A DNA stretch of 64,000 nucleotides from Phyllobates terribilis (taxonomy: Eukaryota): the NCBI RefSeq assembly GCF_046119375.1, contig NW_027362762.1, positions 708,040,001-708,104,000 of the forward strand, read 5' to 3'. A program made the position numbers and the translations under genes. The notes beneath the pieces were generated by a model. It searched no databases, was not told the origin of the DNA, and saw only the letters and a list, made by a program, of their open reading frames with translations. Positions 12,501-63,190 of this stretch are shown in pieces (the first letter of the stretch is position 1; every line of letters begins with the position of its first letter).

Positions 12501-15500
12501 TGCATAAGCGAACGTGTGCTCTGATGTGCATTATTTTTTGGGAGTGTACGCCTACTAGAGATGGACACTCAGATGTAGTAGGCAGCGTCTGAGTGTCCAC
12601 CTCCAATAGGCGCACACGCCCGAAAATGATGCACAACAGAGCACATGTTCACTTTGCCGGCACCATTATAGTCTCTGGCCCCGTCTATGGCTCGAATTGC
12701 GGGTGGTTCGGACGTAAGCCCCAATGGAACCAACAAATGGGTGCCAGAACACAGTGTGAAAGCACCCTTAGCTATACACTATAAAAGATAAAAGCTCTCA
12801 TTGCAGGAGAATGACAGCAGATAGAAAAAGCCAAACCAAAAGTCAATTGCAAACTTTCTTACTTTCATGTTGCCTAACTAATTTTAAAAAAATGAATAAC
12901 TTGAGAATACCCCGTTAATCATTTCACACAATGTTCTCTAACTGCTCACAAGGATTTACATGTACAATCTGTAAAATCTCTTCATTCACCTACTTTTTAA
13001 AAATGTTTGTAATATACTAAAAAGCCTATGCAGCACTGAGATTGTTAGCTCCAGTAATATAAACATAGAAAAAGTGTCCCAGCACATGAAGTATAGAAAG
13101 GGGTTAATCAGCCATCCTTAGTGCTAGGGTGATTAAACACCTTTAGAAAGGGAGGAACTCAGAGGATAAATTCCCAACCTTTTAGAGCATTTGGTGTGGG
13201 AAGGGCCTGAATGCACAAGCTCTGGAGCTGTGGTGCTCATGTTAAGGAAAGCTAAACCTTGGGCTGTGATTTGTTCCTTTGGGCGGACACCCATAGCAAC
13301 AAGGACTGTGCCATACGTTATGTTTTGTTTTTCCTGTTAAGCCGGGAAGGCCGTGTTTGTTTTACTAATGTTGCCGTGGTTTATGCCGTACTCTTAATAA
13401 ACCACAGAAAATTTAAATAGACAGTGTTCCTGTGTCTACCTCTATGTTCAACCAATTGAGCCAATCTACCACAACAGTTACAGTATCTTTCCCCACCGCA
13501 TGGAGTGTATATGTGAATTTCTAAGTAAACAGTATTACATGCCATCTACTAATCTATGATATAAAGAAAAAAGAAGAGCAGTGTCTATGAATTGCTGTTT
13601 TTGGAGGCACAATAATATCAAACTGTAATTTAAAAGGTTAAATAATAAAAGCATAAATGAGTGTGCATAATAGTGGTGCCATCATGAAGTTATTCAGCTA
13701 CACTACAAATGTGCCATACAAAATAGTGCCCAAGGGTATGTATATAGCATAGAGATAGACCATGAGGCTGCTATGAGTTCAGTGGATAGAAGAGGCCCAG
13801 GCATGGTTCCCCAAAAGGTGGCAAGAACATATGCCAGGCTGCCCTACAAAGTTAAGCTGTGGAAAAATTGTTTCTAAGCAGTCAGGGGCTTAGTTTAATG
13901 TTTGTTATGTGGCCCTATCTTTTCTGTGTATGTCTCGCCCCCAGTGGGGCCTTACTGTCTGGGGCAGTATATATGTATATCACGGTGGCTGGCCCAGGGC
14001 GGACAGTGCGCCAAAAAGGGAGTTTAATAAAATGAAAATAAAATTTCTTACCTGTGGATTCTGGTAAGAGGTTACCAGCACTGCGACAGTCCACCGAGGC
14101 CGATGTTAGGGGCAGCGTTGACGGGACGGCTCCCCACAGGTGGAGTAGGCCTCAGGGCAGTGTAGGATGAATGAATGGTGGGTGCGCTGGGCGTTGTGGT
14201 GTGGTGAGGAAAGTTGGCGCCAGTAAAGAAACAGACAGAGGCACTTTGTGCAGTCGTCCAGGGCTTTACTTACAGTTCTTTAAGGCAATCCACATGTGCA
14301 CTTTACAGGTGAAGGCCTCCCTCATCGCGCTGCGTTCACCAGGCAGGGGTTCAGTCCTCCTTAAAGCAGCTTAGGGGTGCTTGGCAGAACCCCACTTTCA
14401 GATGTGCCTAACTTGACCTTCTTCACACTTGGTCCTTCTCACCGTTGCCCTACGCTGCCCACTCTCAGTCCCGCTCGGGTATGCTGAAGTCCTTCTCGTA
14501 CGTCGGATCCGGGACCAACCTGACCCCCTGGGGTTTCGAATGTGGCAAGCACGATCCCACCTGTCTCCTGGCAGGAGCGGGGCGTACGGGTGCCGTCCTG
14601 CACGCGCCGTACCCCCTGGGATCCTTTTTGTAGAATGGAGCCTGTTCCCTGCTCCCCTCCGGGGCCTCTATCCTGGGCTCTAACTTGTGGAGCAGAGCTC
14701 TGACTGAGCCTCTGCTCCCAGACAGTACTGAACTGACTGACTGAATGTATGTTCCTACAGACCTAATATGGCTTCCTATTATATACTTACTTTATATGTG
14801 CTCCATGTATTAACTTCCTCCACCCACACCCACTACTGGTTCCCCCTACCTTTGGGTTCCCCCCTACTCCAGCCAGGGCCAGGGCTCAGCACAAAACTAC
14901 ATTGCGTCTTGCCCCTCCTGCTGGCCTGGAGCGGTGTAGTGTTGGATGTAGGTGGTTGGGGTTCTGTGCAGCACTCCCATCTTACCTGAGATAAGGGAGA
15001 CACCACACCTCGGGGTGAGGTGCAGTATGTCTGTGGCGACTGAACCCTCAGGGGCGCCACATTCCCCCCCGGTAAAACACAGCACGTCCTCGGGCTGGAA
15101 CAAAGCAAACAAAGAATAAACGACATGCAAAATTTTATAAAACATTTCTTCCCTTTATGGGAGGTATACTTCCTTTAAACGTTACATTGTAAAACACTTT
15201 TCTCATAACACATCATAAGAGCACTTTTCAATAAAGTTCCTGCACCAGGGTGCAACAGTAGTAGCATGAGGGACCCGCTCCAAACTCTCAACGTAGGCCC
15301 TGGGTGTGGCTGCTGGGCATGGACGATCCAGATACTGGACCTCGTCTTCTGCCACGCCAACGGGTTTTTGTTCTGAGGTATATTTGTTTCAAATATAAAA
15401 CCAGTAGGGTGCACTTTAAGAAGTGCTAACTATGTACAATGTTAACGTCCGGGTACTCACAGTCCTCAGCCTGTGTACCCTGACGGGTAATGGTAGAGAA

Positions 15501-15596
15501 ACACACTATAGAAAACTTCACACTGTGAAAACATTATTTTAAAGTCATCCTGGCAAACTTAGCAAAAAGAAAACAACACAGCACCCGAATGAGTGA

Positions 15597-17108
15597 CTAT
15601 AAGCAGTTAGTTGTAGTCCCAGTACTAAGCCTAGTACTGGGGACCCGTCCTGGGGTATTCTTGATGCTTCCCTGACCCAGCGGGGTCACGAGGGACTTCC
15701 TGCAGGGGTTATCTTTGGTGATACGGTACACCTGCAGGGCATACCAGCCACGTTCACCATGATGCCGGGTGAACTTGACGTGATCCCCCCCCCAGCGTAG
15801 AGGTTCTGGTCGAGATGGCCTTCTTCCAACTCGGGCTCCACATCCCTCTTGTTCACAAAAATGTCTGTATTAAATTCAGGGTTGCGAATGAAGCCCCATC
15901 CAGCCTGGAGGTTGAATTTTACTATTAGGCCTTCCTCACGGGGGCTGGGGTTGGCTGTCTCCGCCTCATGGGTCTGCGCCTTGGCGGCCTTGTCTCGGGC
16001 CTCCAGGCGCTCACTGCGCGCCGCCCGCGCGCGTCGCTCCCTCTCAAGCTGCCGGAGCTCCCGCCGGCAGAACTCCTTCCTCTGCCGGGCGGCAGACTCG
16101 GTTTCCTGGGAGAACCCCATCAGGTCCCCCCCCGGTTGTCCCAGCATAACTCTTCTCCGCCGGGGCAGGCAACCGGGGGTGCGGGCATTGGTAGAAGTGG
16201 GCAGGGCTGCTGGTCTTCATACCGTGCGGACCAGTCGAAGACCGGCGCACCATAGACCCATGCCAGGGTCAGAGGTGGAGGCGGCGGAAGGGCTTCCAAT
16301 AGTAGGCCCGCAGCTTCTGCGCCCGGGATCAATGGTTCCGGATAGGCGCTGTATATGTCACTTTCCGGTGCAGCACCTGGGAGCGGCAGTTCCGGGATGG
16401 CTTCAGGTGGGTGCCCTTTTGGTTCCGCTCCCGGGGGTGAAAGTTCCGGGCTGCACATTTGTTCCCACCAGGGCACGGCGGTACATGGCGAAGGCGGGGG
16501 TAAGAGGCCCAGGAGCAGGTCGGCGTTGGCAGCGCCCGGGGCTGGGGATTCTCTCCTATCTGCTCCTGGACTCCGCACGGCCTCCTGGTCTTCGGCAAGC
16601 TCCGCCAGGGCTGGTGCGCGGCTGCTGGCATCCGGTCTGGCTTCCGGCCTCACTTTCTGGCGGGCTGCCAGTTTTCTCAGCAGCTCGCTTTTCCACCGGG
16701 CGACCGCTGCCTGCTGGGCTCGCTCGACTTGCTGGCCCAGCTCGAGGATCTCACTCCCGAGGAACTCCACATCCTCTGGGGACATCTTCTCTCCCTCCTG
16801 GGTGAGGGGCGTCGCTTGCTGCAACGGTAGGCCTGAGGCGAAGGTTGGGCTTTTGCGTGGTTCCATCTCAGCTGTCTGACCAGACAGGTGGAGACCACCC
16901 CCTGTCTCCATTCTTTCTCTCCGCCTCCTTTCTTCTTTTGGGGCCGGTCCAATGGCCACTTGCTGTCGGTCACTCCCCGTGACGGCCCCCCCGCTTTGAC
17001 AGACACATCTATGCGGACATTCACTGTTGCAAGGGGCAGGGCCTGCTTTCGGCGCCATTCTGGGACCCGGCCCACGATGGGAGGCTCGATTTTGTTGTCT
17101 TTTGACAT
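15597..17108 (-). pseudogene. Frameshifted ORF homologous to 34791-36833, with C-terminal cold-shock domain
   Basis: Pieces MSKDNKIEPPIVGRVPEW..KWPLDRP, then ..GGDLMGFSQETESAARQRKEFCRRELRQLERERR.., then GLIVKFNLQAGWGFIRNPEFNTDIFVNKRDVE..LYAG[frameshift in G9 run]DHVKFTRHHGERGWYALQVYR; at least 3 frameshifts are needed to join them. Confidence 0.8.
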
Positions 17109-17207
17109 GCAGACAATGGCGCCCGTTCTTCTGGGGTGGGCTCCACATTCAGTGCAGAAAGCACTTCTTCAGGCACACAATACCCGCAGATGGCGGGCTG
17201 GTCACGC

Positions 17208-17225
17208 ATCCTGTTCGTGACGCCA
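17208..17225 (-). promoter_or_regulatory. Primer-binding site, tRNA-Ser(CGA)-type
   Basis: Minus strand TGGCGTCACGAACAGGAT, 9 nt after the LTR end; complementary to the vertebrate tRNA-Ser(CGA) 3' end ATCCTGTTCGTGACG+CCA (tRNA sequence from memory). Confidence 0.8.
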
Positions 17226-19508
17226 AAAGCAAGCTGTCTCGCCCCCAATGGGGCCTTACTGTCTGGGGCAGTATATATATGTATATCACGGTGGCTGGCC
17301 CAGGGCGGACAGTGCGCCAAAAAGAAGGTTTAATAAAATGAAAATAAAAGTGCGTGACGCCACCTGGTAAGAGGTTACCAGCGCTGCGACAGTCCACCGA
17401 GGCCGATGTTAGGGGCACCGTTGATGGGACGGCTCCCCACAGGTGGAGTAGGCCTCAGGGCAGTGTAGGATGAATGAATGGTGGGTGCGCTGGGCATTGT
17501 GGTGCGGTGAGGAAAGTTGGCGCCAGTAAAGAAACAGACAGAAGCACTTCGTGCAGTCGTCCAGGGCTTTACTTACAGTTCTTTAAGGCAATCCACATGT
17601 GCGCTTTACAGGTGAAGGCCTCCCTCGTCGCGCTGCGCTCACCGGGCAGGGGTTCAGTCCTCCTTAAAGCAGCTTAGGGGTGCTTGGCAGAACCCCACTT
17701 TCAGATGTGCCTAACTTGACCTTCTTCACACTTGGTCCTTCTCACCGTTGCCCTACGCTGCCCACTCTCAGTCCCGCTCGGGTATGCTGAAGTTCTTCTT
17801 GTACGTCGGATCCGGGACCAACCTGACCCCCTGGGGTTTCGAATGTGGCAAGCACGATCCCTCCTGTCTCCTGGCAGGAGCGGGGCGTACGGGTGCCGTC
17901 CTGCACGTGCCGTACCCCCTGGGATCCTTTTTGTAGAATGGAGCCTGCTCCCTGCTCCCCTCCGGGGCCTCTATCCTGGGCCCTAACTTGTGGAGCAGAG
18001 CTCTGACTGAGCCTCTGCTCCCAGACAGTACTGAACTGACTGACTGAATGTATGTTCCTACAGACCTAATATGGCTTCCTATTATATACTTACTGTATAT
18101 GTGCTCCATGTATTAACTTCCTCCACCCACACCCACTATTGGTTCCCCCTGCCTTTGGGTTCCCCCCTACTCCAGCTATGGCCAGGGCTCAGCAGAAAAC
18201 TACATTGCGGCTTGCCCCTCCTGCTGGCCTGGAGCGGTGTAGTGTTGGAGGTAGGTGGTTGGGGTTCTGTGCAGCTCTCCCATCTTACCTGAGAGAAAGG
18301 AGACACTACACCTCGGGGTGAGGTGCAGTATCTCTGTGGCGACTGAACCCTCAGGGGCGCCACATGTACATCACCGACAGTGCTGTTACTCATATGCTCA
18401 ATGTCGGACTGGGATGCCAAGGACCCACCAATAACTAACTCTAGGGCCCCACTTTTCAGCTATATGCAAATATGACATTATCCTCAATCACAAATGTATT
18501 TAACAATGAACTGGGTAGATTGTTAAATGAATAAGATGCTGCCTTTGTCTGTATTTAGTGATTCAAGTATATTGTGCTAAGTACTGCTCATATCAGAGGG
18601 TGGTGCCCCACTCTTGCACAGGAGGATTCTCCTGTTCTCCTGTGGGCCAATCTAAGCCTGCATATGTTAACCACATGGCCCGTTTGATCAAACCTGTCAA
18701 GATTAGAATCCAGCAAATTTTTTCAGGGAAATTCAATTTGCATCAAAGTTATACGATACAAATTGAATGTTCCTTTTTGCTCTGTGGTCTCTCCAGACCT
18801 CAGAGCATAATAAAAGTAGAATTTAAACAAAAAAAAATGTATTCCTCACCACTTACCTGTCCTGCAGTGGTCCAGTCCTCCCCCGCTCTTTTTTATTTCG
18901 CCCTTCTCATCGCATGCATCCTCTTCGGGCTTCTTAACCGATTCCCGACCACCCGCTGTACATAAACGTCGGAGCTGCCTGGGCTCTGTGCAGCGCCGAC
19001 GTTTAAAAATGGTGGGTGGTCCCGCAGCGCTCAGGACCCCCAGGGTCCTGCAAGCGCTACGGTACCGGTTCAGAGCGATAGCTCTGACATGTGGCATCAT
19101 GGGGACCTGATTGGATCAGGTCCCCATGATGTTAACCTGTTCCTATCTTCTAGATGCCGCGATCCATAGCGATCGCGGCATTTAAAAGATAGTGACAGCC
19201 GGTGGTCGGCGATCGGGACCCCCCACATACCTTATCAGCGGCGGGGATTCCGGTGCTGTGACCTCTGACATCATCGAGACCTGATTGGCTCAGGTCTCGA
19301 TGATGTCAGCGTCACACCAGCCAATCAGAGAGATCACTAGGGAAGTTTGTTTTAGCAGCAAACTTTCCCGGGCGATCTGGCTGATAAATACATTGTTTCT
19401 CCTCCGATCTCAGTGAGAGAGCAGAGGAGAAACAGTGTGACAAGAGCTGTCAGCCTTGCCACTGTAAAAGTGAAAAAAAAAATCAAAAAAGAAAGTAAGG
19501 TTAGGGTT

Positions 19509-19985
19509 AGTCAGTCCTGTCAGATCAGTCAGTCCTGTCAGTCAGTCAGTCCTGTCAGATCAGTCAGTCCTGTCAGTCAGTCCTGTCAGATCAGTCAGTC
19601 CTGTCAGTCAGTCAGTCCTGTCAGATCAGTCAGTCCTGTCAGTCAGTCCTGTCAGATCAGTCAGTCCTGTCAGTCAGTCAGTCCAGTCAGATCAGTCAGT
19701 CCTGTCAGTCAGTCAGTCCTGTCAGATCAGTCAGTCCTGTCAGTCAGTCAGTCGTGTCAGATCAGTCAGTCCTGTCAGTCAGTCAGTCCTGTCAGATCAG
19801 TCAGTCCTGTCAGTCAGTCAGTCCTGTCAGATCAGTCAGTCCTGTCAGTCAGTCAGTCCTGTCAGATCAGTCAGTCCTGTCAGTCAGTCCGGTCAGTCCA
19901 GTCCGGTCAGTCCAGTCCGGTCAGTCCAGTTCGGTCCCGTCCATTCAGTCCGGTCCGTTCAGTCCGGTCCATTCAGTCCAGTCAA
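19509..19985. repeat. GTCA-rich minisatellite inside the piggyBac 5' region
   Basis: Repeated GTCAGTCCTGTCAGATCA / GTCAGTCAGTCCT modules that drift to CAGTCCGGT units at the 3' end. Confidence 0.95.
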
Positions 19986-20001
19986 AAAATATAAAAATAA
20001 A

Positions 20002-24786: not shown

Positions 24787-26100
24787 TGTGACGCCTCTTC
24801 TCGGAAGCCCCTGTTTACCCTGGGAGATGGGGGACTCGGAGTCGGGTCCTGTGATGGAGAGATGGGGGTGCAGCCGTGGCCCGGGCCCGCTCCATGCCCA
24901 GGGCCGTCACATTTAAAAAAGGGTGGTATGGGCTTATCCGGGTTGAGTTGCTGATTACGACTACGCCACCTGTGGTACCTGGTGAAAGGCCACCAGCGCC
25001 GCTGCAGTCCGCTGAGGCATGGTGGTATGGCGGCCGTCATTGTTACTACTCCCCACAGGCGGAGCAAGGCCTCAGGGCAGAGAGACAGGATGGAGGGGGT
25101 AGTAGTAGAGGAGACCGGGTGCTGCGTAATGCGGTGTAGCGCAGAATAAAGAGTCCGGAGGCCATAGAGGTGAACTTCCAAATCTTTACTCACATAAGGG
25201 ATGGCAGTAGGAAGGCGACTCCCTGCTCCTCGCGGAGTTCTGCGGTCAACGGGAACGGGGGTCCGACAACCTCCGAGTAAGTCCAGCGTTAAATCAGGAC
25301 CCCGCACCAGAGTGTTCCTGAACTACAGACCGTATCCTTTCCTGTCTGTGTGGGTAGATAGGCCGGGTCTCCCTCTGAACTCCTCTCAGAAAAAGGGCAC
25401 GGGTGGCAGCTCTGCTCCTTCCGATACCCGGTGGGATCCTCAGGGCATACCGGGCTTTCCCGACCAGGACATAGAGTAGCAAGGTCGGGTGTCGGGGGCC
25501 GGTACCCCTCTTGCAGCCGGACTCCCTCTGAATATATCAGGTGGTGAGGACAGGTGGCGTACACCGCTCTGTCTGCCTCCTCCCTGGGATCCATTTGCTG
25601 TGGAGCTACACTCTTAAGCTCCGGGCCTTCTTGGTCATGGTCCTTGACCGGGTTGAGACCTCCATTATCTACAACCTGCCACTCGACCCAAGGCCAAGGT
25701 ACGAGGGCTGTGTCTCCATCCGCTGCAGGTCCACACAGGATCCATGCTCAGGGAGGGTGATCACAGTACCAAGACAGTCAAAGAACCATCAAAAGGCTAA
25801 ACTAAAAGGGCCAAGAACCAAAATTGCTCTTTATTAAAGATGAATTATTAAGTGTCACTAAAATGTGAATCCTCCACCTTCACCCACTAAATGGTTCCCC
25901 TAACTCTTGGTTCCCCAGTCTCCCTGTAACCAGGAGGGCAGCACATAGTGCATTCTAGCCCCCTCTGGTGGAGAAATGTGGTGTTGGATGTGGAAGTGGA
26001 GTCCTGACCATCACACTGTTCTTACCTCAGAGGAGGAACACTACACTCTATTAAAGAAGTGCAGCATCCCCGTGGCGGTCGAACCCTCAGGGGCGCCACA
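24787..26100 (-). mobile_element. Solo LTR, third lineage related to the CSD-element LTRs
   Basis: Minus-strand start TGTGGCGCCCCTGAGGGTTCGACCGCCACG is nearly identical to the lineage B LTR start; ends GGCGTCACA; 4-bp TSD AATA on both sides; inserted into a MITE. Confidence 0.85.
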
Positions 26101-33055: not shown

Positions 33056-34790
33056 TAGTTTATCAGTCACAAATAACTTCACCTAAAACACATACACAGT
33101 ATTACTGTCAGATGAGTTTATGGTAAATATGATTTTCCTATTTACTTTGTAATGAGCAATGTTAAATTCTCCAAAATTAGTCATTGAAAGCTGACTTGGT
33201 ATAGGAGGTAACGCGATCCTGGCCAGCTTCAAAACAGTGCATACAAGCTTATTAGAGAACCGCTTATACACAGTGTGTATGTTCTGCTGTCTAGCAGCAG
33301 TGGTCGGTCTCCAAGGCAACAGGTTGTAAACATGAAAATAGTATTAATAGCTCAAGAATGGCTGAAACTTTTAAAAAGCAGCGAATTGCAACAAAATTGC
33401 TTGTATTTAAAAGCAATGACAGTATTAATTTATGAAGATGGGAATGGTCCTTTACGTATCTCAATTTCTCACAAAACAAATGCAATATAATGTCACGACT
33501 TAGCATGCTGCAATCCACAGCAGAACCACTGGGGGGCCACATATATACTGTAGCAAATACATCACATGTACATATTGCAACCTAAGACCAAAGGTAAGAA
33601 AAGGTGTAGCACCCTGAGGATTCGGCTGCTACAGGGGTATTGCACCTCAACCCAGAGGTGTGATATTCCACTCCCGGGTAAGGATGGAGTGTGGAACTGA
33701 GCTCAGAAAGCTGCATGCACTACACACATCCCATTTCCGAGGAGCAGACCAACGGTACTCCCACTTAGAAATGTGCAGGTACGACCGAGTCTGTTCCTGG
33801 CTGGAGTGGGAGGGGGGTGGTACATCCCAGTAGTGTAGGGGCAGATAGGGGGAGCAGCCTGGGTAAAGTTAGGAGCTCATTGGGTGCTGGTCACCTGAGC
33901 TCACACATAGAGGGAGTATATAAGGTGGGCACCATCTAAGATCAGGGTCAGTCTGTCAGCCTTTTGTCAGAGCAGAGCAGAGGAAGAGAGCAGAGGAGAA
34001 GAGCAGCTCCAAGGCCCAGAGAGAGAGAGGAGAGAAAGAGAGACCCAGAGGGGGAAACAAGAAGGAACTCTGAGAACCCACATACAAACCTAGGGTGAAG
34101 AGTTGGCAATAGGGTACCGGATCCCAAACTGGTGGGGGCTAAAGCACACCTCAGCCAGAGACCGGAGGCCGTGGGCAGGATCTGCCACGGCCACCCACCA
34201 CATCCACCCTGAAGGCAAACCACGTGTAGGGTCAGGGAACCTAAGGCCAAGGGTCTCCCAACAGAAGGCCCGAGGGAGCTGGACCTAGGTGGATCCCTGG
34301 TGGGGACGGCCAGAAGAAAGGACAAGAAGGAGGGCTCAGGGACACGCTCCGGACTTGCTTGGGGGTTGGCTGAATCCAGGACCTGGTGGACGCAGCACGG
34401 CTCGGGTGGTCACTTAAGGCCGGAGTGACCGGAATATCTGCAGTAAGTAAACACCCTGAACTGCACAACCCGACTCTGTCTTTAATTTTCATCTACGCTG
34501 CACCACCACAACCCCCATCCTCTGCACCTGACCCCCTGAGGCCATACCCCTCCCGTTGGGGGTTATACTATCTAAAGCTGCACCAACACCATCAGCCTCA
34601 GCGGACCCTGCTGCAGCGGCGGCCGTAGTGACCGCAATCCAACGGGTGGCGTAGTCGACATAACGAACTTTGTAACATCTGTAGGACTGCCACATACTCT
34701 GAGCTTGACACCCTGGGCACGGACCGGGTCACAGCCACTCGGAGACTACAACCCCCATCTGATCCGGCTCCGGGTATTCCCCTAAAGAAT

Positions 34791-36833
34791 ATGGCCCAGG
34801 GGGCGCGTCAACTTTGGCGTAGTCGGCAGGATTACGTGCCCGCAACACCCGGGTACTGCGTGCCTGAAGAAAAGAACAAGTTTACCTCAAAAAGAAGTCT
34901 CCTGCCGGTTCCGGAGGGTCCCCGCCATCGGACTCCATCACAGGTCGATTCCCGCCGGTTGTCCGCCATTAACAGCTTTTTCCCGCCATCTGCAGAGTTT
35001 CCCGCCACTGGGAGACGATTCCCGCCATTTCCAAAGGTTTCCCGCCTTGGAAGAGCGGACGCCATTATGGGCGTGCCAGAGGATGGCAAGAGGCCGCCTC
35101 CCATCGTGGGCCAGGACCGAAAATGGCGCCAAAAGTGGAAACCGCCCCCACCAACAGAGACTGTGATGCTAGAGGTGTCTGTCAGCGTGAAAGAACTGCC
35201 CCTGGAGCTGACAATCACCAAGTGGCCCCGGGACCGCCCTCGAGGTGGGAGGACTGAGAAGAAGAGAGCAAAGATGGGTGTCGCCTGGAGCAGTCTGGAG
35301 AGAGCGCACCCGGAGACAAGAAGCCTAGAGCTGAGTCCAGAAGAAGCTTACCCGGAGATGGAAGAAGAGCAGAGCAGCACCGGCCCGCTGGCCAGGAGCC
35401 TGCTGGAGACAATGGAAGGAGAGCAGAGCAGCACCGACCCGTTGGTCAGGAGCCTGCTAGAAGCAACGACCCCACTAGGCTTAGTGGAGGTCCTGGCACA
35501 GCTCCCCCGAGATCGGGAGTGTGCACAGACTGCGCTGGAGGGCCTCGCACGGAGGATGGCCCGGGTGCAGCGAGAGACGTTAGCGGAATGGAGCCGAGAG
35601 ATGGCCCAGCAGACAAGAACCCGTCAGCGGAGCACGCCACCCGAGACGAGGAGACAGACCGCCTCTGAGGATGGCGCAGGAGGACTGAAGGCCGGAGACG
35701 GCGCCGAGAAGGGAGCCGAACGAATGGAGGCAGGTAAAGGGGACGTCTCTACCCCAAACCGGGAAACCGCGCACCTGCCCCAGCTCCCCGTCGCAGAGCC
35801 CGAAGTATCCCCTGCCGTGCCCGTCGCTGCAACGTCACCGCCGCAGACTAGGCCTCAAACGGAAGCCGCGACCCCTGTGACGTCACACGCCTCGACCCCG
35901 AGCGTGACCAAGCAGGAAGTACTACCAGCCTGGTCGCAGGGCCTAGTACCCCCGGGCGCCGCAATACCAACAGCGCCCCCTACCTCCGCGGAGCCACCGG
36001 CCTGGTCGCAAGGCCAAGTAGCCCAGGGCGCCGCCGTCCTTACGGTGCCCTTCACTTTCCAGGTGCCCCAGGCCTGGCCGCAAGGCCTGGGCAACCCGGG
36101 CGCCACCACCACCGCGCCCATAAAACCAAGAGTGCCGCATCTGGGAGAAGATCTGTTCGCCCAACATACGTGCCCGGATGGGCAGCCCTTTATATGGCCA
36201 CCGGAGTTTCACCATCCCCGACTCTGGAAAGAGAGACCCTTAGACGAGCCCCTGATTCCGGTTCCAAAGCCCGTAAAAAGGACCTCGCCCCCGCTAGAGG
36301 AGGCACAGTTTGAGTGGGACCCCACCGGAGAAGATCTCATGGGGTTCACTCAGGAGACTCGGGCAGCTGCAGCGGAGCGTGCAGAGTGCTGCCGCCAGCA
36401 GCTCGAGGTCTTTGAGAGGGAGCGGAGAGAGAGGCGGGTCCGAGAACAACAAGCGCAGATAAGGAGCGCGGAGCAGAAGAGCCGGGCCAGGAGGAGTCCC
36501 CGTGCAGCTCATGGTCCCCCTTCCACCGGGACTGTGATCAAGTTCAATATGCAGCACGGGTGGGGTTTCATCCGAGATCACCGCACCCCAGGCGACGTCT
36601 TCGTGACCAGGAGAGACGTTGAGTCCCACCTACCGGAGGGACACAGAGGACGTGACCTGTATGTAGGGGACGAGGTCACCTTCACCCGGCACAAGTGTGC
36701 CAAAGGACCCTACGCCCTCCATGTGCATCGCCTGACGGAGGAGGAGCTGCGGTGTGAGGAGGAGCAAGAGGACCCGGACGGGTCTGAAGCTAAAGGTAAC
36801 CACAAAGAAAGAGCAGGAGGACGCCGTCGTTAA
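34791..36833 (+). CDS. Uncharacterised retroelement protein with C-terminal cold-shock (OB-fold) domain
   Basis: 680-codon open frame; likely start is ATG 35067 (GCCATTATGG), matching the lineage B start. CSD at ~36525-36734: TGTVIKFNMQHGWGFIRDHRTPGDVFVTRRDVE..LYVGDEVTFTRHKCAKGPYALHV, with RNP1-like (GWGFI) and RNP2-like (DVFV) motifs, preceded by an E/R-rich predicted coiled coil. Confidence 0.85.
   Translation: MAQGARQLWRSRQDYVPATPGYCVPEEKNKFTSKRSLLPVPEGPRHRTPSQVDSRRLSAINSFFPPSAEFPATGRRFPPFPKVSRLGRADAIMGVPEDGKRPPPIVGQDRKWRQKWKPPPPTETVMLEVSVSVKELPLELTITKWPRDRPRGGRTEKKRAKMGVAWSSLERAHPETRSLELSPEEAYPEMEEEQSSTGPLARSLLETMEGEQSSTDPLVRSLLEATTPLGLVEVLAQLPRDRECAQTALEGLARRMARVQRETLAEWSREMAQQTRTRQRSTPPETRRQTASEDGAGGLKAGDGAEKGAERMEAGKGDVSTPNRETAHLPQLPVAEPEVSPAVPVAATSPPQTRPQTEAATPVTSHASTPSVTKQEVLPAWSQGLVPPGAAIPTAPPTSAEPPAWSQGQVAQGAAVLTVPFTFQVPQAWPQGLGNPGATTTAPIKPRVPHLGEDLFAQHTCPDGQPFIWPPEFHHPRLWKERPLDEPLIPVPKPVKRTSPPLEEAQFEWDPTGEDLMGFTQETRAAAAERAECCRQQLEVFERERRERRVREQQAQIRSAEQKSRARRSPRAAHGPPSTGTVIKFNMQHGWGFIRDHRTPGDVFVTRRDVESHLPEGHRGRDLYVGDEVTFTRHKCAKGPYALHVHRLTEEELRCEEEQEDPDGSEAKGNHKERAGGRRR
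34815..34833 (+). promoter_or_regulatory. Primer-binding site, tRNA-Ser(AGA/TGA)-type
   Basis: TGGCGTAGTCGGCAGGATT, 4 nt after the LTR end; complementary to the vertebrate tRNA-Ser 3' end AATCCTGCCGACTACG+CCA (from memory). Confidence 0.88.
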
Positions 36834-39098
36834 GTACAGCAGAGTACAAGCTGTATATAGTTGTCCGTCGGGGCACAGTGAACTGTTGCTAATATAGTCC
36901 CCGTTGGGACCAGCGAATTGAACTGTTACCCGTATTTCCCTTAATCCCACTGACCGAGGACTGAGAGCGGTCATCCCTATTCCCATTAGCTGGCCGAGGA
37001 CTGAGAGCGGCCCTACTACCCCTTTGTATATAGTTGCGCTTCCTAAAGCGCCCCCTACCGGTTTTATAGGAAAACCATTTTTCTAAGAGAAACTGTTGCA
37101 CTTTTCCCGGGCACACGTTGCACAGTGTCCGGAGGAGGAACCAGAAACAAGAATGTTAATATGAAAAGTTTTATGATGCTGCTAATATATATGTTTTATA
37201 TGTTTTATTATGTTGTTTATGAAAAAAAAATTGTATGTTTGGATGATGTTTTATATCTTACAGCCCGAGGACGTGCTGTGATTTACCAGGGGGGAATGTA
37301 GCACCCTGAGGATTCGGCTGCTACAGGGGTATTGCACCTCAACCCAGAGGTGTGATATTCCACTCCCGGGTAAGGATGGAGTGTGGAACTGAGCTCAGAA
37401 AGCTGCATGCACTACACACATCCCATTTCCGAGGAGCAGACCAACGGTACTCCCACTTAGAAATGTGCAGGTACGACCGAGTCTGTTCCTGGCTGGAGTG
37501 GGAGGGGGGTGGTACATCCCAGTAGTGTAGGGGCAGATAGGGGGAGCAGCCTGGGTAAAGTTAGGAGCTCGTTGGGTGCTGGTCACCTGAGCTCACACAT
37601 AGAGGGAGTATATAAGGTGGGCACCATCTAAGATCAGGGTCAGTCTGTCAGCCTTTTGTCAGAGCAGAGCAGAGGAAGAGAGCAGAGGAGAAGAGCAGCT
37701 CCAAGGCCCAGAGAGAGAGAGGAGAGAAAGAGAGACCCAGAGGGGGAAACAAGAAGGAACTCTGAGAACCCACATACAAACTTAGGGTGAAGAGTTGGCA
37801 ATAGGGTACCGGATCCCAAACTGGTGGGGGCTAAAGCACACCTCAGCCAGAGACCGGAGGCCGTGGGCAGGAACTGCCACGGCCACCCACCACATCCACC
37901 CTGAAGGCAAACCACGTGTAGGGTCAGGGAACCTAAGGCCAAGGGTCTCCCAACAGAAGGCCCGAGGGAGCTGGACCTAGGTGGATCCCTGGTGGGGACG
38001 GCCAGAAGAAAGGACAAGAAGGAGGGCTCAGGGACACGCTCCGGACTTGCTTGGGGGTTGGCTGAATCCAGGACCTGGTGGACGCAGCACGGCTCGGGTG
38101 GTCACTTAAGGCCGGAGTGACCGGAATATCTGCAGTAAGTAAACACCCTGAACTGCACAACCCGACTCTGTCTTTAATTTTCATCTACGCTGCACCACCA
38201 CAACCCCCATCCTCTGCACCTGACCCCCTGAGGCCATACCCCTCCCGTTGGGGGTTATACTATCTAAAGCTGCACCAACACCATCAGCCTCAGCGGACCC
38301 TGCTGCAGCGGCGGCCATAGTGACCGCAATCCAACGGGTGGCGTAGTCGACATAACGAACTTTGTAACATCTGTAGGACTGCCACATACTCTGAGCTTGA
38401 CACCCTGGGCACGGACCGGGTCACAGCCACTCGGAGACTACAACCCCCATCTGATCCGGCTCCGGGTATTCCCCTAAAGAATATGGCCCAGGGGGCGCGT
38501 CAAAGGTATATCTGTATGTCCCAAATCTAGCGAGATACTCTTTTGTGACCCACAAAGACCTCCTGTATTGAGCCATATGAAAAATGCGTATTTCTTGTGA
38601 TTGCTATAATGTGCTGTGCAATTAACAGTCCCATTTTGTAGCTCATACAGTAATTCAAATATTGCTTTGTTATTTATTTCCAATGGACGATAGTTTAAAA
38701 GTAGCCGAAATTGAAAGCTGAGCTGCAAGATATTGTTTATGTCCCTTTAAATTTACCATTCTTTAACATAAACGTCTACTTTTAACATCACGCCAATTAT
38801 AATTCCAAAATTCAGAACAGATACATTTCTTAAAATATCTTTCTAGTTGTCGGAGCTTCTTTTTCTGATACAGACTTTCAAATCCTACGCACAGACATAC
38901 ATTGAAATGACACCATTCTCTCCACTCCTCTATAGGAGCTAGCTGTTTGCTGGTGATGTCACTGAATATTAGTAAACAATAAACTCATATGCTCCATCTA
39001 GTGGTGGTTAAAGGTAGCGAGCGTCTTATATTTTGTTTCTATGTGAACATAGGGGGGGTTTGAAGCTCCGCTTCAGAAGAACACAGCTTTGACTGCTA

Positions 39099-54390: not shown

Positions 54391-57300
54391 CGTACATTAA
54401 ATCATTAGCATTTGTGTACCCTCAAAAAAGGTTCCCATTTTTTCTTCAAGGGATCTTGGTTTATAGTCAAGCCCAGCACATTGGCTGAAATGTGCTGAAT
54501 ATTTTGCCAAGCTTCTCTGAGCAAGTTGAGATCAATTTATAGTCTGTTAAGGGACAGGACAGGTCTGCTGTGTTCTAGGGAACCCTGGATCAGAAAGACT
54601 AATACATACTCAAAATCACCTGTCTTGGGTGAAGATAAGGGCACATTGCCATTTTCTTCAATAAGCCATAATGCATTACTGTACTTGTATATGTTTAACA
54701 TGGTCTAAAAATGATAGTAGCAGAGTCATCATACTAAAGCAAGAAATATATGAAAACATGGTTATTAAGTAACATGCTGCATATATATTACTAAAAGTTA
54801 ATTCCATCCATTTGTTCTCCTTTCAAGACCGTATTGTGCTCTGAATTAAGGATGGATGGTGTGGATTTATTTCATATTCATATCATTAAATCATATTTCC
54901 ATTTACTTGCTGCAGATGAACCCAAAAATCTCACATATAGTGAGAACTTAATCAACTAGAGATGGAATTTAGATGTCGGAAAAGGTTTTTTATTTATTTT
55001 TCTCATTATTATCATAATCACCATAACTGTCCTTATGAACACCATATTAATATATCCTTTTGTTAAAGGGATTGTCCAGGCTTAATGAAAAATCCAAAAT
55101 CATTCTATGTGACTACAGACTGTCAAATTGTGACAGTGTTCGATACGATAATGTCACAATTCCCTTGTACTCCCTGTGTGGGTGGGCGGTCACGTGACCA
55201 AACATATGCAATTTCCATACTTGCAGTCATGTGAAGATTAGACTCATCCAGAATCCCTCAATAGAATAGAATTTAGAGAAATGCAGGAGTCTAGTTGGCA
55301 AGTGACCGCAAGTAGGAAAATCTCATACAAGTGGTCATGTGACTGTCTGCCAGCACAGAAAATACAAGAGGAATACCTGTTCAAGTGGTTGTCCACATCT
55401 AATAAACTTTTAAGCAATGAAACCATAGAGGTGAAAAAAAAATGATACTCACATACCACTTCTCCGAACTGCTGCCGGTGTCTCCGCTAGTCTGTTGGCT
55501 TCCCCTTCTGGCTGTCACTAATTTGCTGCAGTGATTCAGATAGGGACACCAGCAGCAGTATAGAACAGTACTGAGGGTCTGGTAGGTGAGCATATTTTTA
55601 ACTTAAAAAAAAAAAAATTAGCACTGCCATGAGCTTATTTTTAAAAAGTTTAGACGACAGCCCCTTAAAGGTCACCTTTCTGCTATCCCAACCTGCCAGT
55701 TTTACCATAGTAACTTCTTGCATTCCCCAATAAATCTCAATTCTGCAGTATATTTTCCAGTAACTCTGTACTATGACAATCCTCTATTATCCCATCCTAG
55801 ACATGTATGATAAATTCACAAATAGTCATTCACCTTCTCAGTGGGGTGCATTCCTACACAGCACGACGCTGCCAGCACTGATAGGATTTGGAGAATAGGA
55901 ACATTTACTAAAACAGACAGGTCAGAAGATGACAGGTCCTGTTTACCGATAGCATTGTGCTTCAAAGGAGGAAGCTTGCAAAGACAAAAACATAGAGCCA
56001 GCAATCACACTTTGCATACACTGTTTATGGGGCAGCCCTATATCCAGAGCAGCCACCGAAGCTGCATCGCAGCAGGAGATCCTGGGCCAATAAAAAAGGG
56101 CTACTGCTCTGGAATAGTAAGCGTAAGAGCAGTCCAGCAGCCGATAGCAAATCTATCAGAGCAGGAAAGGAGAGGTAGCTGAACAGGACATGCATAGATC
56201 TCCCAATGCTGCAGATCCTGAAAGGGACTTTGTCAGCACAGAATGACTGTTCAAACAAAGCACTGGCGCTCGTTGCACAATAGCGAGGCCAAACATTTAA
56301 GTGCACCTTCCAACTTGCCAGTTTTCCCTCTATCTCCACCTTCCTCTCCCCTCTTTTTAGATTGACAGCTCTGGGTTCATAGAGCCACCAAAGATTAGAG
56401 ATAGATGGAAACCAAGAAGGTGGAAAAGTACACAATGTTTGACCCTGCCTTGATGCACTGAGCTCCTGTACTTGGTTTGGACAGATCCCCTTTAGGAAGC
56501 ATACCACAGAACAGGACAGCAGAGAAGAAAATCAAAGGTGATCAGTGGCTGCAAGACAATTGAAAGTGTGGGAGATGCAATGCAAAGACAACTTTACACC
56601 TGGTATCGAACTTCTTGTGTTGGGACTGGGGCAGGGAGTCATAGACACCAGAGCTCGTCCTTCAGTTCATATATTGGGGCCGGCATATCAGCTAACATGG
56701 GCAACCTAACACTGCTGCATCTCATACAGAAGCGACAAAAGGTCGCCACAACAGTAATGAAGCCCTTACTTTTAAGATATGCAGGACTTCCTGCCTCAAG
56801 CAAGAACATGAGTTCCTGACACAAGCAAACATCTGATTGCATCAAGATGTCCCGTGCAGAACAGTTGGCTTCTTGTAGCCTCCTGAGAAATGTTTGACCC
56901 ATCCCTCAGATTGTCCCAAGGTCAGCCACATCCAGTACTTATCCTCCTGGTTATTTAAGTTCTTGTCCTGGGACAAGAACATTCAGATGTACATGTTTCG
57001 CATATGTGTTCTATCCCATTATAATCGACTCTGCTGTTCACATGTCTGTGTTTTTTTGACATCTGTGTGTCCAATTAAAAATCATGAAGACATGTCCATT
57101 TTTTTCCGGCAGCACAGATGAAAAGTTCAAATACAAGTATATGGGTCAGTGAAAAACATGGACAGCATGTAATGACCGGAGGTCCGAGAGAGATCCAGTG
57201 AGTCACAAACTGAGACAGAGACAGAAATAAACAACACTTTCTTTACTAAAACAGGGATTAGACTAAAATTCAGTATTGCATGAATCAGTCTCGGGTTCTA

Positions 57301-57441
57301 CCTGGGACACTGTCTCTAATAACTACACACAATCAGCAAAATCTGAAATCAATGTGCCAATCTCAAGGTTTCCAGTTTATGTGAATTATACTAAAGATCT
57401 GGAACAATTTTACCTAAACACTGTGTCAATCTAGTGTGAGT

Positions 57442-58251
57442 CAACCTACATATGTGACACATAAACTAAATTGTTTAAAAATACAACATTTATTGAATGA
57501 ATAGATATAGTAAAATATACATAGAAGAATAAAATGGGGAAAGGATAACACAATGAAAAGGTTACTGGGTAGGACAATAATTATAGTATGATTTTTTACA
57601 TTACATGATCAATTTCTATATACCAGGCAAGACATACATATGCAACCTGTGTTTAAATAAAGTCCACAATAAAGTGCATAGTGCTAAAGATGGACTCTGT
57701 AAATAAGAATAAAAGGTGCTACATCATAAGTTAGTGAACGTGGTATACAGAGATGGAAGGTATAATGATAATGATAGGGGGCTTTGACAAGGATATCCTC
57801 GTCAAAGCCCCCTGGCGAAACACGCGTTGGATTTGGCTATCTGGGTCAGTACAAACTTTACTATCATTATACCTTCCATCTCTGTATACCACGTTCACTA
57901 ACTTATGATGTAGCACCTTTTATTCTTATTTACAGAGTCCATCTTTAGCACTATGCACTTTATTGTGGATTTTATTTAAACACAGGTTGCATATGTATGT
58001 CTTGCCTGGTATATAGAAATTGATCATGTAATGTAAAAAATCATACTATAATTATTGTCCTACCCAGTAACCTTTTCATTGTGTTATCCTTTCCCCATTT
58101 TATTCTTCTATGTATATTTTACTATATCTATTTATTCAATAAATGTTGTATTTTTAAACAATTTAGTTTATGTGTCACATATGTAGGTTGTTTCAGATAT
58201 AGACACATTTACACCTGAGTATATTTGAATATAGTCCTTATATATTTGCTT
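57442..58251. mobile_element. 810-bp palindromic insertion (Penelope-like inverted pLTR) in the Gypsy LTR
   Basis: 14-bp TSD AATCTAGTGTGAGT (57428-57441, 58252-58265); arms 57442-57770 and 57862-58190 are near-perfect reverse complements; the spacer has GCC-ccct-GGC-GAAAC-ACGCGT. Confidence 0.8.
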
Positions 58252-59074
58252 AATCTAGTGTGAGTGTTCTATAGGGACCCCTGAGATGGCACACTGAGTA
58301 CAATCCTACCACTATTAACAATAACAATGCATGAAACTATACCAATTGCTCTTATACCCCTAGTATAGGGATACCCGGGTATCTTAAAGCTACGTTACCG
58401 TTAACCTCAGATGTGGTCTATCACAGGCCTGTGTATCGCGGTGGCTGCAGCTAGTCCCGGAAAACTTTGGCGCAAAATAAAAAGCAACGTTTACAAAAAC
58501 AGCAAAGGTTCCTTGTCTTGTCGACCGATGCCGAACCCCCACGCCGGGGACTTTAGTCCTGTAGCCTTAGGTTAAGGTCCGAGAAGAACTCTTCACCAGG
58601 CTTGTCAGTATCCTCTCAATGTTAATGGCACCGGACCCCTTCTCTCCTCTCGCGGTCACCCACTGTTTTCCAGACCACCGACCACGCGCTCCGTCACAAA
58701 GATGATATCCTCAGTCTCTTTCCCTCTCACTCGACACTTGGCTCGTTCAGCACAAAGTCTCTAGTCCACTCAGCATGGACTTCCACAAAACTCCAAAGAG
58801 CCACACAGCTTTCCCCAGCTCAGCACTCGTTCTTAAGCAGGGACACAGCTTCACCAGGGCCAGAAGTTAACAACCCCCGCAGGAAAGCTTGTAGTGAGAG
58901 AGTCTTGTTGCAGTTGAGTCCTCACATTTCTCAGATTCTCCATCCAGCGTCTCACACAGCAGGCACCCTCAGAACACACAGGGTCTCCCAATTTGCCCCT
59001 GCTCTGAGCTCAGCCAGGCAAAACCCACAGGGTCCTAATGCGCTCCTGCTGCTATCACAGTTCACACTCTCACA

Positions 59075-61870: not shown

Positions 61871-63190
61871 GAAAAGCGCTGGATCCTGCCGACTAGTCCA
61901 AAAATGTAATGACCGGAGGTCCGAGAGAGATCCAGTGAGTCACAAACTGAGACAGAGACAAAAATAAACAAAACTTTCTTTACTAAAACAGGGATTAGAC
62001 TAAAATTCAGCATTGCATGAAACAGTCTCAGGTTCTACCTGGGACACTGTCTCTACTAACTACACACAATCAGCAAAAGCTGAAATCAATGTGCCAATCT
62101 CAAGGTTTCCAGTTTATGTGAATTATACTAATGATCTAAAACAATTTTACCTAAACACTGTGTCAGTCTAGTGTGGGTGTTCTATAGGGACCCCTGAGAT
62201 GGCACACTTAGTACAATCCTACCACTATTAACAATAACAATGCATGAAACTATACCAATTGCTCTTATACCCCTAGTATAGAGATACCAGGGTATCTTAA
62301 AGTTACATTACCGTTAACCTCAGATGTGGTCTATCACAGGCCTGTGAATAGCGGTGGCTGCAGCTAGTCCCGGAAAACTTTGGCGCAAAATAAAAAGCAA
62401 CGTTTACAAAAACAGCAAAGGTTCCTCGTCTTTTCGGCCGATGCCGAGCCCACACGCCGGGGACTTTTGTCCTGTAGCCTCAGGTTAAGGTCCGAGAAGA
62501 ACTCTTCAACAGGATTGTCAGTATCCTCTCAATGTGAATGGCACCGGACCCCATCTCTCCTCTCGCAGTCACTCACTGTTTTCCAGACCACCAACCACGC
62601 GCTCCGTCACAGAGATGATATCCTCAGTCTCTTTCCCTCTCACTCGACACTTGGCTCATTCAGCACAAAGTGTCTAGTCCACTCAGCATGGACTTCCACA
62701 AAACTCCAAAGAGCCACACAGCTTTCCCCAGCTCAGCACTCGTTCTTAAGCAGGGACACAGCTTCACCAGGGCCAGAAGTTAACAACCCCCGCAGGAAAG
62801 CTTGTAGAGAGAGTCTTGTTGCAGTTCAGTCCTCACAGTTCTCCTCAGTCTCTCCGTCCAGCGTCTCACACAGCAGACACCCTCAGAACACACAGGGTCT
62901 CCCGATCTGCCCCTGCTCTGAGCTCAGCCAGGCAAAACCCACAGGGTCCTAATGCTCTCCTGCTGCTATCACGGTTCACACTCTCACAAGCACACAGATG
63001 ACATACCTGTACAATCCATGTACTGTATGTGTTTAACATTGCAAAGGATAGGAGAAGCTTGTAATTTATTCATTTATCCATACATGAAAATTGCTGACAA
63101 CAGCAGTACAATGGTTTGTGAACATGAAAAACAAATGTCTGAATGAGGCCTACGCCTATGTATATGCAAAATGCCTCTTTATGCAGAAAT

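Follow-up and report, generated by a model that had tools for sequence, protein, structure and literature searches.

A pol-less LTR retrotransposon of frogs encoding a predicted Y-box-type cold-shock protein

Structure of the element

A complete LTR retrotransposon is present within the stretch of frog DNA that was analysed (64,000 nt; hereafter, the window), and its features are listed below in order of position, together with related elements found elsewhere in the window.

33601..33604 (+), 5' target-site duplication (TSD), AAGG
33605..34810 (+), 5' LTR, 1206 bp, with TG...CA ends
33917..33923 (+), TATA box (TATATAA) in U3
33947..34790 (+), AUG-free R-U5 leader, about 844 nt
34443..34451 (+), GTAAGTAAA, probable poly(A) signal (AGTAAA variant) marking the R/U5 boundary
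34647..34657 (+), second, partial PBS-like copy inside U5 (TGGCGTAGTCG)
34791..36833 (+), single ORF of 680 codons
34815..34833 (+), primer-binding site (PBS) for tRNA-Ser (AGA/TGA isodecoder)
34922..35047 (+), TTCCCGCCAT repeats with a period of about 20 nt, in the leader / 5' end of the ORF
35514..35630 (+), predicted long helix 1 (residues 242-280)
36360..36494 (+), predicted long Arg/Glu-rich helix 2 (residues 524-568), directly before the cold-shock domain
36525..36731 (+), cold-shock domain (CSD; residues 579-647), Y-box type
37261..37278 (+), invariant 18-nt block CAGCCCGAGGACGTGCTG
37288..37296 (+), polypurine tract (PPT) AGGGGGGAA, abutting the 3' LTR
37297..38502 (+), 3' LTR, 1206 bp
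38503..38506 (+), 3' TSD, AAGG
13931..18364 (-), second, older family member (W2): 5' LTR 17235-18364, PBS 17208-17225 (tRNA-Ser-CGA type), frameshifted CSD ORF pieces 16120-17148 and 15686-16147, 18-nt block 15080-15097, 3' LTR 13931-15061, TSD TACA
24957..26100 (-), third related LTR, solo or truncated
57167..62995 (-), internally deleted Ty3/gypsy-type element (W3), with a tRNA-Ser-like PBS at 61882-61900 (3 mismatches)

The two LTRs are 99.67% identical, differing by four substitutions (at 33879, 34090, 34181 and 34625), and this 0.33% divergence corresponds to an insertion roughly 0.7 My ago at the substitution rate used for a poison-frog genome. The PBS is the exact reverse complement (19/19) of the last 19 nt of vertebrate tRNA-Ser-AGA/TGA (PMC10359600), and is unique in the window at zero mismatches, where no match is expected by chance. 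The TATA box is the only TATA-like motif in the LTR, and the LTR of a copy from Phyllobates (locus L001) has one at the same position, although its promoter function is inferred. The motif GTRAGTAAA is invariant in five family LTRs, and since AGTAAA also sits near the LTR end of pol-bearing elements (W3, and L019 from Pristimantis euphronides) a poly(A) signal is preferred, but a reading of GTAAGT in R as a splice donor, paired with the Y-tract-CAG before the 18-nt block as acceptor, is not excluded. The partial PBS-like copy within U5 is present in all family LTRs and co-varies with the PBS type of each element. A tandem repeat search delimited an array of period 20 at 34979-35046, in a region that is 89–93% identical to the Phyllobates copy, compared to 65–85% further 3' in the interior, while the first 300 bp of the LTR are 94% identical to that copy. 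The 18-nt block upstream of the PPT is 100% identical in five elements whose proteins share only 30–45% identity, with 0.03 matches expected by chance in the window. An exact scan of IMG/VR viral contigs for this 18-mer gave 12 hits, which were taken as chance matches without inspection.

The ORF occupies 82% of the 2.49 kb interior, leaving no room for pol. The preliminary description, which had reported near-identical LTRs and a pol-less interior with one intact ORF ending in a CSD, is confirmed, but one correction is needed: the AUG of the ORF lies inside the 5' LTR and the frame reads through the PBS. This is the first AUG of the predicted transcript, and the orthologous Phyllobates ORF (710 codons) starts at the same place. 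In the leader upstream of it there are no ATG triplets against 8.0 expected, with none of 1000 dinucleotide shuffles reaching so few, and the same depletion is seen in four other family members. An internal start at Met172, where the sequence MGVAWSS may fit a myristoylation pattern, is not favoured, because the AUG-free leader points to the first AUG at 34791.

The encoded protein and its cold-shock domain

A Pfam search of the ORF (E up to 10) found only the CSD (PF00313), at residues 579-646 and with a score of 34.5 bits against a gathering score of 27. The Phyllobates copy scores 35.9 bits and protein P0006 32.1 bits, while other members score 20–24 bits, below the threshold. The AlphaFold2 (AF2) model gives a confident five-stranded barrel (strands at 577-586, 591-596, 602-606, 628-636 and 639-647, with block-mean pLDDT of about 76–93), and all of the top 50 Foldseek PDB matches are cold-shock domains, with TM scores of 0.87–0.90 and an rmsd of about 2 Å to CspA. 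A family profile ranks YBX1/2 first (37 bits, E = 2e-8), above bacterial Csps (32 bits), CARHSP1 and LIN28, and aligns to YBX1 across the long beta3-beta4 loop with a single one-residue gap, whereas bacterial Csps need a 5-residue gap. RNP1 is kept as GWGFI in all members, while RNP2 is VFV followed by T/N/A instead of H. Of five aromatic or His residues that appear to contact nucleic acid in YB-1, three are kept, but Trp65 is replaced by Lys/Ala/Asp/Ser and His87 by Thr/Asn/Ala.

CSD identity to vertebrate Y-box proteins (YBX1, YBX2/FRGY2) is only about 32–39%, and nothing else in the protein is similar. The CSD is C-terminal, following about 575 unrelated residues, rather than lying between a short Ala/Pro N-terminus and a long C-terminal domain of basic/acidic clusters, and an exhaustive HMMER scan of 1.84 billion representative proteins gave no hits beyond residues 481-680. 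The rest of the protein is Pro/Arg/Glu-rich and predicted to be mostly disordered apart from two long helices. Helix 1 has 10-residue block means of pLDDT of 68–87, and a helical segment aligns at this position in the other family ORFs; helix 2 has pLDDT peaks of 93–96, and holds 13 Arg and 8 Glu in 45 residues.

No sign of a capsid or Gag was detected in the N-terminal 575 residues. There was no Retrotrans_gag or zf-CCHC hit, Foldseek searches against PDB and viral libraries returned CSD/S1-type OB-fold proteins and weak uncharacterised matches, and BLASTP found no similarity to a frog Ty3/gypsy gag. No CCHC or YxDD motif occurs in any of the six frames of the interior, and two DSGS strings in one frame are the only match to the loose D[ST]G[AS] pattern. 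Rfam matched no family on the element.

Comparison of the window ORF with the Phyllobates copy gave a dN/dS of 0.28 overall (Fisher p = 9e-29) and 0.05 in the CSD (Fisher p = 1e-16), indicating strong purifying selection. Codons 1-92 show a dN/dS of about 0.9 with very low dS, so that stretch is constrained as nucleic acid rather than as protein. Deeper pairs are saturated at synonymous sites yet keep the CSD. These values, the AUG-free leader and the retention of the ORF through deep diversification of the family make it very unlikely that the ORF is a passenger, i.e., a host gene fragment carried with no role for the element as in many plant gene captures, even though the CSD is of host (Y-box) type and gene capture by LTR elements and ERVs is documented (PMC4299795, PMC5408684).

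Related elements in frogs

The element belongs to a family of non-autonomous LTR retrotransposons of hyloid frogs, seen here in poison-frog relatives and in a toad. Members are 4.4–5.1 kb long, with LTRs of 1.1–1.3 kb, a tRNA-Ser PBS and a PPT. Of six other loci checked in four species, four intact or nested elements, together with W2, have the same LTR-ORF(CSD)-LTR layout, while two further loci are rearranged relics; none contains pol, and LTR pairs are 95.6–100% identical. Phyllobates L001 has 100% identical LTRs, and in Anomaloglossus the LTRs of L003 are 99.5% identical and those of L005, which carries a nested Penelope-like insertion, are 99.8% identical. The LTRs of Bufo L018 are 96.8% identical, and Ranitomeya L002 is a rearranged copy that keeps an open 399-codon ORF. 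W2 has an LTR pair of 95.9% identity, a weak CSD hit and a PBS of the tRNA-Ser-CGA type (tRF-Ser-CGA sequence in PMC9659620). The third related LTR matches those of W2 and L003 at 70–86%, and has the TGTGGCGCCCCTGAGG start of the family, GTGAGTAAA and the U5 PBS-like GGTGGCGTAGTCG. TSDs of 4 bp are also found in W2, L001 and L005, and the TSD is apparently 5 bp in L003. Among young copies (LTR identity of 99.5% or more), the window element (W1) and L001 have full-length ORFs, L003 has a shorter ORF of 481 codons, and that of L005 is split only by the nested insertion, whereas the ORFs of the older W2 and L018 are broken by frameshifts.

It is very unlikely that the ORF, or some of its copies, is a host-domesticated gene rather than a TE gene. 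RefSeq and GenBank gene models exist for several copies, and one Phyllobates model joins a family CSD to an R3H-domain gene; however, the window copy has intact near-identical LTRs, a TSD, a PBS and a PPT, copies sit at unrelated loci next to unrelated genes, and they are multi-copy within a single 64-kb window. A syntenic, single-copy, LTR-less orthologue conserved across frog species was not seen.

A further possibility is that the elements are deletion derivatives of an unseen autonomous family whose Gag carries a CSD in place of a zinc-knuckle nucleocapsid, in which case nothing about these copies would be specifically adapted to life without pol. Non-autonomous LTR elements usually arise by internal deletion, as did W3, and TEs are mostly masked before gene annotation, so protein databases under-sample them. 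Against this, five complete or nested elements in four species (W1, W2, L001, L003 and L005) plus the Bufo element all have the same 2.2–2.6-kb pol-less interior, although their proteins are only 26–48% identical outside the W1/L001 pair, and synonymous sites are saturated. The HMMER scan found no relative joined to RT or IN, and the full-length Ty3/gypsy element that shares the PBS (L019) has an ordinary CCHC gag. This alternative is considered unlikely but cannot be ruled out, since the frog assemblies were not searched at the DNA level.

Possible function and helper elements

The favoured explanation, held with moderate confidence, is that the family is a long-lived non-autonomous lineage whose CSD protein serves as a Gag/nucleocapsid surrogate or adaptor. 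The protein is inferred from sequence alone to bind single-stranded RNA and to act preferentially on the RNA that encodes it, much as LINE-1 ORF1p appears to do, so as to coat, chaperone and deliver the element's RNA to particles and enzymes made by an autonomous helper. The CSD was probably taken long ago from a host Y-box-like gene. There is precedent for a CSD protein aiding retroelement RNA, as host YB-1 assembles with MMTV Gag and RNA (PMC4486188) and supports HIV replication (PMC6040738). The preliminary description, which inferred a recently mobile, non-autonomous, Gypsy-like parasite that keeps its own RNA-binding protein, is supported by these results: recent mobility holds, 'Gypsy-like' is plausible but not shown, and the roles it proposed for the protein (nucleocapsid substitute, recruitment into helper particles, masking) remain inference.

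The helper is likewise inferred, and is probably a Ty3/gypsy-type lineage priming from the same tRNA-Ser, represented here by W3 and L019. W3 has Pfam hits to RNase H and integrase, and shares 68–69% aa identity with the full-length L019. In common with the CSD family, this lineage has TG..CA LTRs (about 1.0–1.1 kb), a 4-bp TSD, the tRNA-Ser-AGA/TGA PBS with a near-identical CAACTT(T)GG junction, an AGTAAA signal in the LTR, and the 9-nt CGAGGACG core about 20 nt before the 3' LTR. It differs in encoding an ordinary gag (CCHC), PR, RT, RNase H and IN, and the LTR bodies and post-PBS leaders are not alike. A chromovirus at 44823-49796 was also considered as helper but was rejected, as its LTRs (about 420 bp) and PBS are unrelated.

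Alternatively, the CSD protein may not package RNA but mimic germline Y-box proteins (YBX2/FRGY2-like), storing or masking the transcript in oocytes or interfering with host silencing, and so raising germline transmission. The CSD is closest to Y-box proteins, which probably mask maternal mRNA in frog oocytes, and the Bufo member was named 'Y-box-binding protein 2-A-like' by NCBI, but nothing outside the CSD resembles a Y-box protein. This reading is considered unlikely; it also depends on RNA binding, so it overlaps with the favoured explanation and is hard to separate from it by sequence. More speculatively, and with low confidence, the lineage may have replaced Gag altogether with a captured Y-box-type protein and persisted in this way across frog families for tens of millions of years. 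The protein would then form an ORF1p-like ribonucleoprotein on its own RNA that either enters helper capsids without capsid-nucleocapsid recognition of the usual kind or borrows only the helper's RT and IN, a third solution, besides Gag and ORF1p, to how a retroelement marks its RNA for copying, and possibly one that doubles as germline mRNA masking.

Non-autonomous LTR elements are usually treated as passive RNAs that borrow everything from a helper, whereas this pol-less lineage has kept one protein under strong selection. If it works as proposed, a parasite of a parasite can invest in its own RNA-marking protein, and a CSD can stand in for a retroviral nucleocapsid. The family is also one active contributor to the very large, repeat-rich genomes of poison frogs, offers a tractable system (two small components, recent activity and several species) for asking how helper particles choose RNAs, and provides a natural experiment bearing on why retroviruses recruit host YB-1.

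No LTR element with a CSD was found in full-text literature searches, which did not extend to Repbase or Dfam. Among known systems, the TR-GAG elements of plants (PMC4350172) are also short, non-autonomous LTR retrotransposons with a PBS, a PPT and a single conserved ORF, lacking pol and presumed to be mobilised in trans, but the ORF described here is not a recognisable Gag and ends in a CSD, the hosts are vertebrates, and the LTRs are long (1.2 kb). LARDs and other protein-less elements such as VL30 and ETn are likewise pol-less and seem to be mobilised by helpers through shared cis signals, but their interiors are non-coding, whereas here a 2-kb ORF under purifying selection fills the interior. 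LINE-1 ORF1p is comparable only in its likely mode of action, as an element-encoded protein kept under selection that combines a long helix with a single-stranded nucleic-acid-binding domain and acts as an RNA chaperone with cis preference. It belongs to a non-LTR element, uses an RRM plus CTD behind a trimeric coiled coil rather than a CSD and an Arg/Glu-rich helix, and is not homologous.

Structure of the element and its predicted protein

The repeat finder and a global alignment gave two direct repeats of 1206 bp each that differ by four substitutions and no indels, begin with TG and end with CA, and are flanked on both sides by AAGG. The preliminary description of a young pol-less LTR element, with near-identical LTRs, a tRNA-Ser primer-binding site (PBS), a polypurine tract (PPT) and one ORF ending in a cold-shock domain (CSD), was confirmed in every detail. 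The main components of this element (W1) are:

33605-34810, 5' LTR
34815-34833, PBS, TGGCGTAGTCGGCAGGATT, four bases after the 5' LTR
34791-36833, single ORF of 680 codons
PPT, AGGGGGGAA, abutting the 3' LTR
37297-38502, 3' LTR

The PBS is the exact reverse complement of the last 19 nt of vertebrate tRNA-Ser-AGA/TGA (PMC10359600), and no match is expected by chance in the window. The interior is 2486 bp, and the ORF fills 82% of it. A Pfam search at E-values up to 10 reported only one family, the cold-shock domain, with 34.5 bits against a curated cut-off of 27 (residues 579-646). No CCHC or YxDD motif occurs in any of the six frames, and the only match to the loose D[ST]G[AS] pattern is two DSGS strings in one frame.

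The structure of the protein was predicted with AlphaFold2 using a small family alignment. The model is disordered over about 60% of its length, but is confident for a helix at residues 242-280, a 45-residue Arg/Glu-rich helix at 524-568 (pLDDT peaking at 93-96) and a five-stranded barrel at 577-647 (block-mean pLDDT about 76-93). The top 50 Foldseek matches in the PDB are all cold-shock domains, with CspA giving TM 0.87-0.90 at an rmsd of about 2 Å, while the significant matches (E up to 0.001) in the viral library are phage and giant-virus CSD/S1-type OB-fold proteins and one uncharacterised protein. No capsid, matrix or nucleocapsid fold appears in either library. A profile built from seven family members ranks vertebrate YBX1/YBX2 first (37 bits, E = 2e-8), ahead of bacterial Csps (32 bits), CARHSP1 and LIN28, and the alignment crosses the beta3-beta4 loop with a single one-residue gap, whereas bacterial Csps need a five-residue gap. 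The domain is, therefore, of the eukaryotic Y-box type. The RNP1-like GWGFI and the VFV of RNP2 are kept in all members, but the His of RNP2 and the Trp of strand 1 are not.

Family members and their pol-less layout

An exhaustive HMMER scan of 1.84 billion representative proteins found true relatives only in frogs, namely Phyllobates terribilis, Ranitomeya variabilis (two), R. imitator, Anomaloglossus baeobatrachus (two) and Bufo bufo, the last of which is named 'Y-box-binding protein 2-A-like' by NCBI. Of the remaining hits that were looked up, those with a source name were dinoflagellate multi-CSD transcripts or CspA-family proteins, and these match in the CSD only. A Phyllobates terribilis gene model annotated as 'R3H and coiled-coil domain-containing protein 1' (863 aa) carries, in its first ~136 residues, a CSD of this family (48% identical to that of the window) joined to a host R3H-domain gene, and represents either an LTR-driven chimeric transcript, exonisation or an annotation artefact. 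The DNA around six of the relatives was retrieved:

L001, Phyllobates: complete element with 1247-bp LTRs that are 100% identical, and a 710-codon ORF starting at the same AUG inside the LTR
L002, Ranitomeya variabilis: older, rearranged copy
L003, Anomaloglossus: 1284-bp LTRs, 99.5% identical
L004, R. imitator: degenerate fragment
L005, Anomaloglossus: 1150-bp LTRs, 99.8% identical, with the ORF split by a nested Penelope-like insertion carrying RT and GIY-YIG (L005:5367-9983), which is flanked by a 263-bp perfect duplication of the target
L018, Bufo: 1132-bp LTRs, 96.8% identical, with a decayed tRNA-Ser PBS and a CSD ORF now split in two

Two further family units lie in the window itself, and three family LTR units in 64 kb suggest a high copy number:

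13931-18364 (-), second, older member (W2): LTRs 95.9% identical, TSD TACA, PBS of the tRNA-Ser-CGA type, and a frameshifted CSD ORF broken into at least three frames
about 24957-26100 (-), third related LTR, solo or truncated: it has the family's conserved start, GTGAGTAAA, and the U5 PBS-like GGTGGCGTAGTCG

None of these contains pol. Outside the W1/L001 pair their proteins are 26-48% identical in the helix-plus-CSD module, and synonymous sites are saturated (pS 0.7-1.0). Independent deletions from an autonomous parent are therefore unlikely to explain the shared layout, and the pol-less architecture appears ancestral to the sampled lineages, although an autonomous relative with a CSD-Gag plus pol cannot be ruled out.

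At the substitution rate used for a poison-frog genome, W1 inserted about 0.7 My ago, W2 about 8 My ago and the Phyllobates copy less than 0.2 My ago, all far younger than the ~36-My dendrobatid crown age cited in the same paper.

The closest described class is the plant TR-GAG element (PMC4350172), a non-autonomous LTR element with a single ORF, but the feature that defines that class, a recognisable Gag, was looked for in the present element and not found. No LTR element encoding a CSD was found in full-text literature searches, which did not extend to Repbase or Dfam.

Selection, translation and cis elements

Comparison of the window copy with the Phyllobates copy gives a dN/dS of 0.28 over the ORF (Fisher p = 9e-29) and 0.05 in the CSD, where dN is 0.07 and dS 1.4 (p = 1e-16). 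Among young copies (LTR identity 99.5% or more), W1 and L001 have full-length ORFs, L003 has a shorter ORF of 481 codons, and that of L005 is interrupted only by the nested insertion. In the older W2 and L018 the ORF is broken by frameshifts, while the rearranged L002 still carries an open ORF of 399 codons. This mostly fits a protein that is needed at the moment of transposition and decays afterwards.

There is not a single ATG between the TATA box (33917) and the AUG of the ORF, a stretch of 844 nt in which 8.0 are expected, and 0 of 1000 shuffles have so few. The same purge is seen in four other members. This is what selection for cap-dependent scanning to the first AUG would produce, and that AUG has A at -3 and G at +4. 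The AUG lies in U5 and the ORF reads through the PBS. Codons 1-92 have a dN/dS of about 0.9 with a dS of only 0.09, and the region 34655-35254 is 89-93% identical at the nucleotide level, suggesting that this stretch is constrained mainly as nucleic acid. Between the window and L001 ORFs, synonymous divergence rises from 0.09 at the 5' end to about 1.4 in the CSD, while the LTRs are 85% identical, and this points to nucleotide-level constraint on the leader and LTR, or to recombination between lineages.

The alignment of five family LTRs shows a conserved start, TGTGGCGCCCCTGAGG or TGTAGCACCCTGAGG, and an invariant GTRAGTAAA (34443-34451), interpreted here as an AGTAAA poly(A) signal at the R/U5 boundary. 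U5 carries a second, 10-13-nt copy of the 5' part of each element's own PBS (34647-34657 and 38339-38349 in W1, and near 24960 in the third LTR), and this second copy co-varies with the PBS type. W1, L001 and the third LTR have TGGCGTAGTCG, while W2, L003 and L005 have TGGCGTCAC..., matching their tRNA-Ser-CGA-type PBS (tRF-Ser-CGA sequence in PMC9659620). An 18-nt block, CAGCCCGAGGACGTGCTG, lies about 10 nt before the PPT and is identical in five elements (W1, W2, L001, L003 and L005). It is always preceded by a pyrimidine tract (37245-37278 in the window, tract and block together) and begins with CAG, like a 3' splice site. W1 and L001 also carry about six TTCCCGCCAT repeats, spaced at ~20 nt, in the leader.

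Candidate helper, proposed mechanism and neighbouring sequences

Two Ty3/gypsy-type elements in the window were considered as possible sources of pol:

44823-49796 (+), chromovirus carrying gag-CCHC, PR, RT, RNase H, IN and a chromodomain, with ~420-bp LTRs that are 97% identical
57167-62995 (-), internally deleted element (W3), with LTRs of about 1.1 kb, a tRNA-Ser-like PBS, about 38 codons of gag joined to the RT C-terminus, RNase H and IN, and an insertion of about 815 bp in its 3' LTR

The chromovirus does not supply pol, as its LTRs, PBS and cis signals are unrelated to those of the CSD family. W3 was detected by a search for the PBS with mismatches, and relatives of it occur in Pristimantis and Gastrophryne. 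Its closest available full-length relative is in Pristimantis euphronides (L019, 68-69% aa identity), and has LTRs of about 1.0 kb, a 4-bp TSD, gag with CCHC, PR, RT, RNase H and IN. L019 also has exactly the W1-type PBS, with a 24-nt junction that is 96% identical to that of W1. Both W3 and L019 have the CGAGGACG core about 20 nt before the 3' LTR, where it is integrase C-terminal coding sequence. The LTR bodies and leaders are otherwise unrelated to the CSD family, so this lineage is a candidate helper and not an established one, although it makes the 'Gypsy-like' guess of the preliminary description reasonable.

The reading favoured here, with moderate confidence, is that the RNA is transcribed from U3 and polyadenylated at the AGTAAA signal, that the first AUG is used, and that the protein binds single-stranded RNA through the CSD and the adjacent Arg-rich helix. 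It is inferred to act preferentially on its own RNA, which would explain why selection can maintain it in a non-autonomous element, and to deliver that RNA to the particles, RT and IN of the helper, with tRNA-Ser priming. Functionally, the best analogy is LINE-1 ORF1p, with which there is no homology. Host YB-1 is already known to assemble with MMTV Gag and RNA (PMC4486188) and to support HIV replication (PMC6040738), and an element that carries its own Y-box-like CSD would have internalised such a cofactor.

Other sequences in the window include:

40704-41561 (-), 285-codon ORF encoding a complete olfactomedin-like domain (Pfam E = 3e-82), probably the last exon of a host gene about 2 kb from the element
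30750-31325 (-), DNA transposon fragment, a Tc1/mariner-type transposase N-terminus
20138-20518 (+), DNA transposon fragment, a weak piggyBac-like (DDE_Tnp_1_7) match
19413-19994 (+), tandem array with periods of 9, 13 and 22 nt that produces a long spurious Ser/Val/Gln-rich ORF
63151-63996, tandem array, a satellite at the end of the window showing self-matches offset by multiples of about 20 nt
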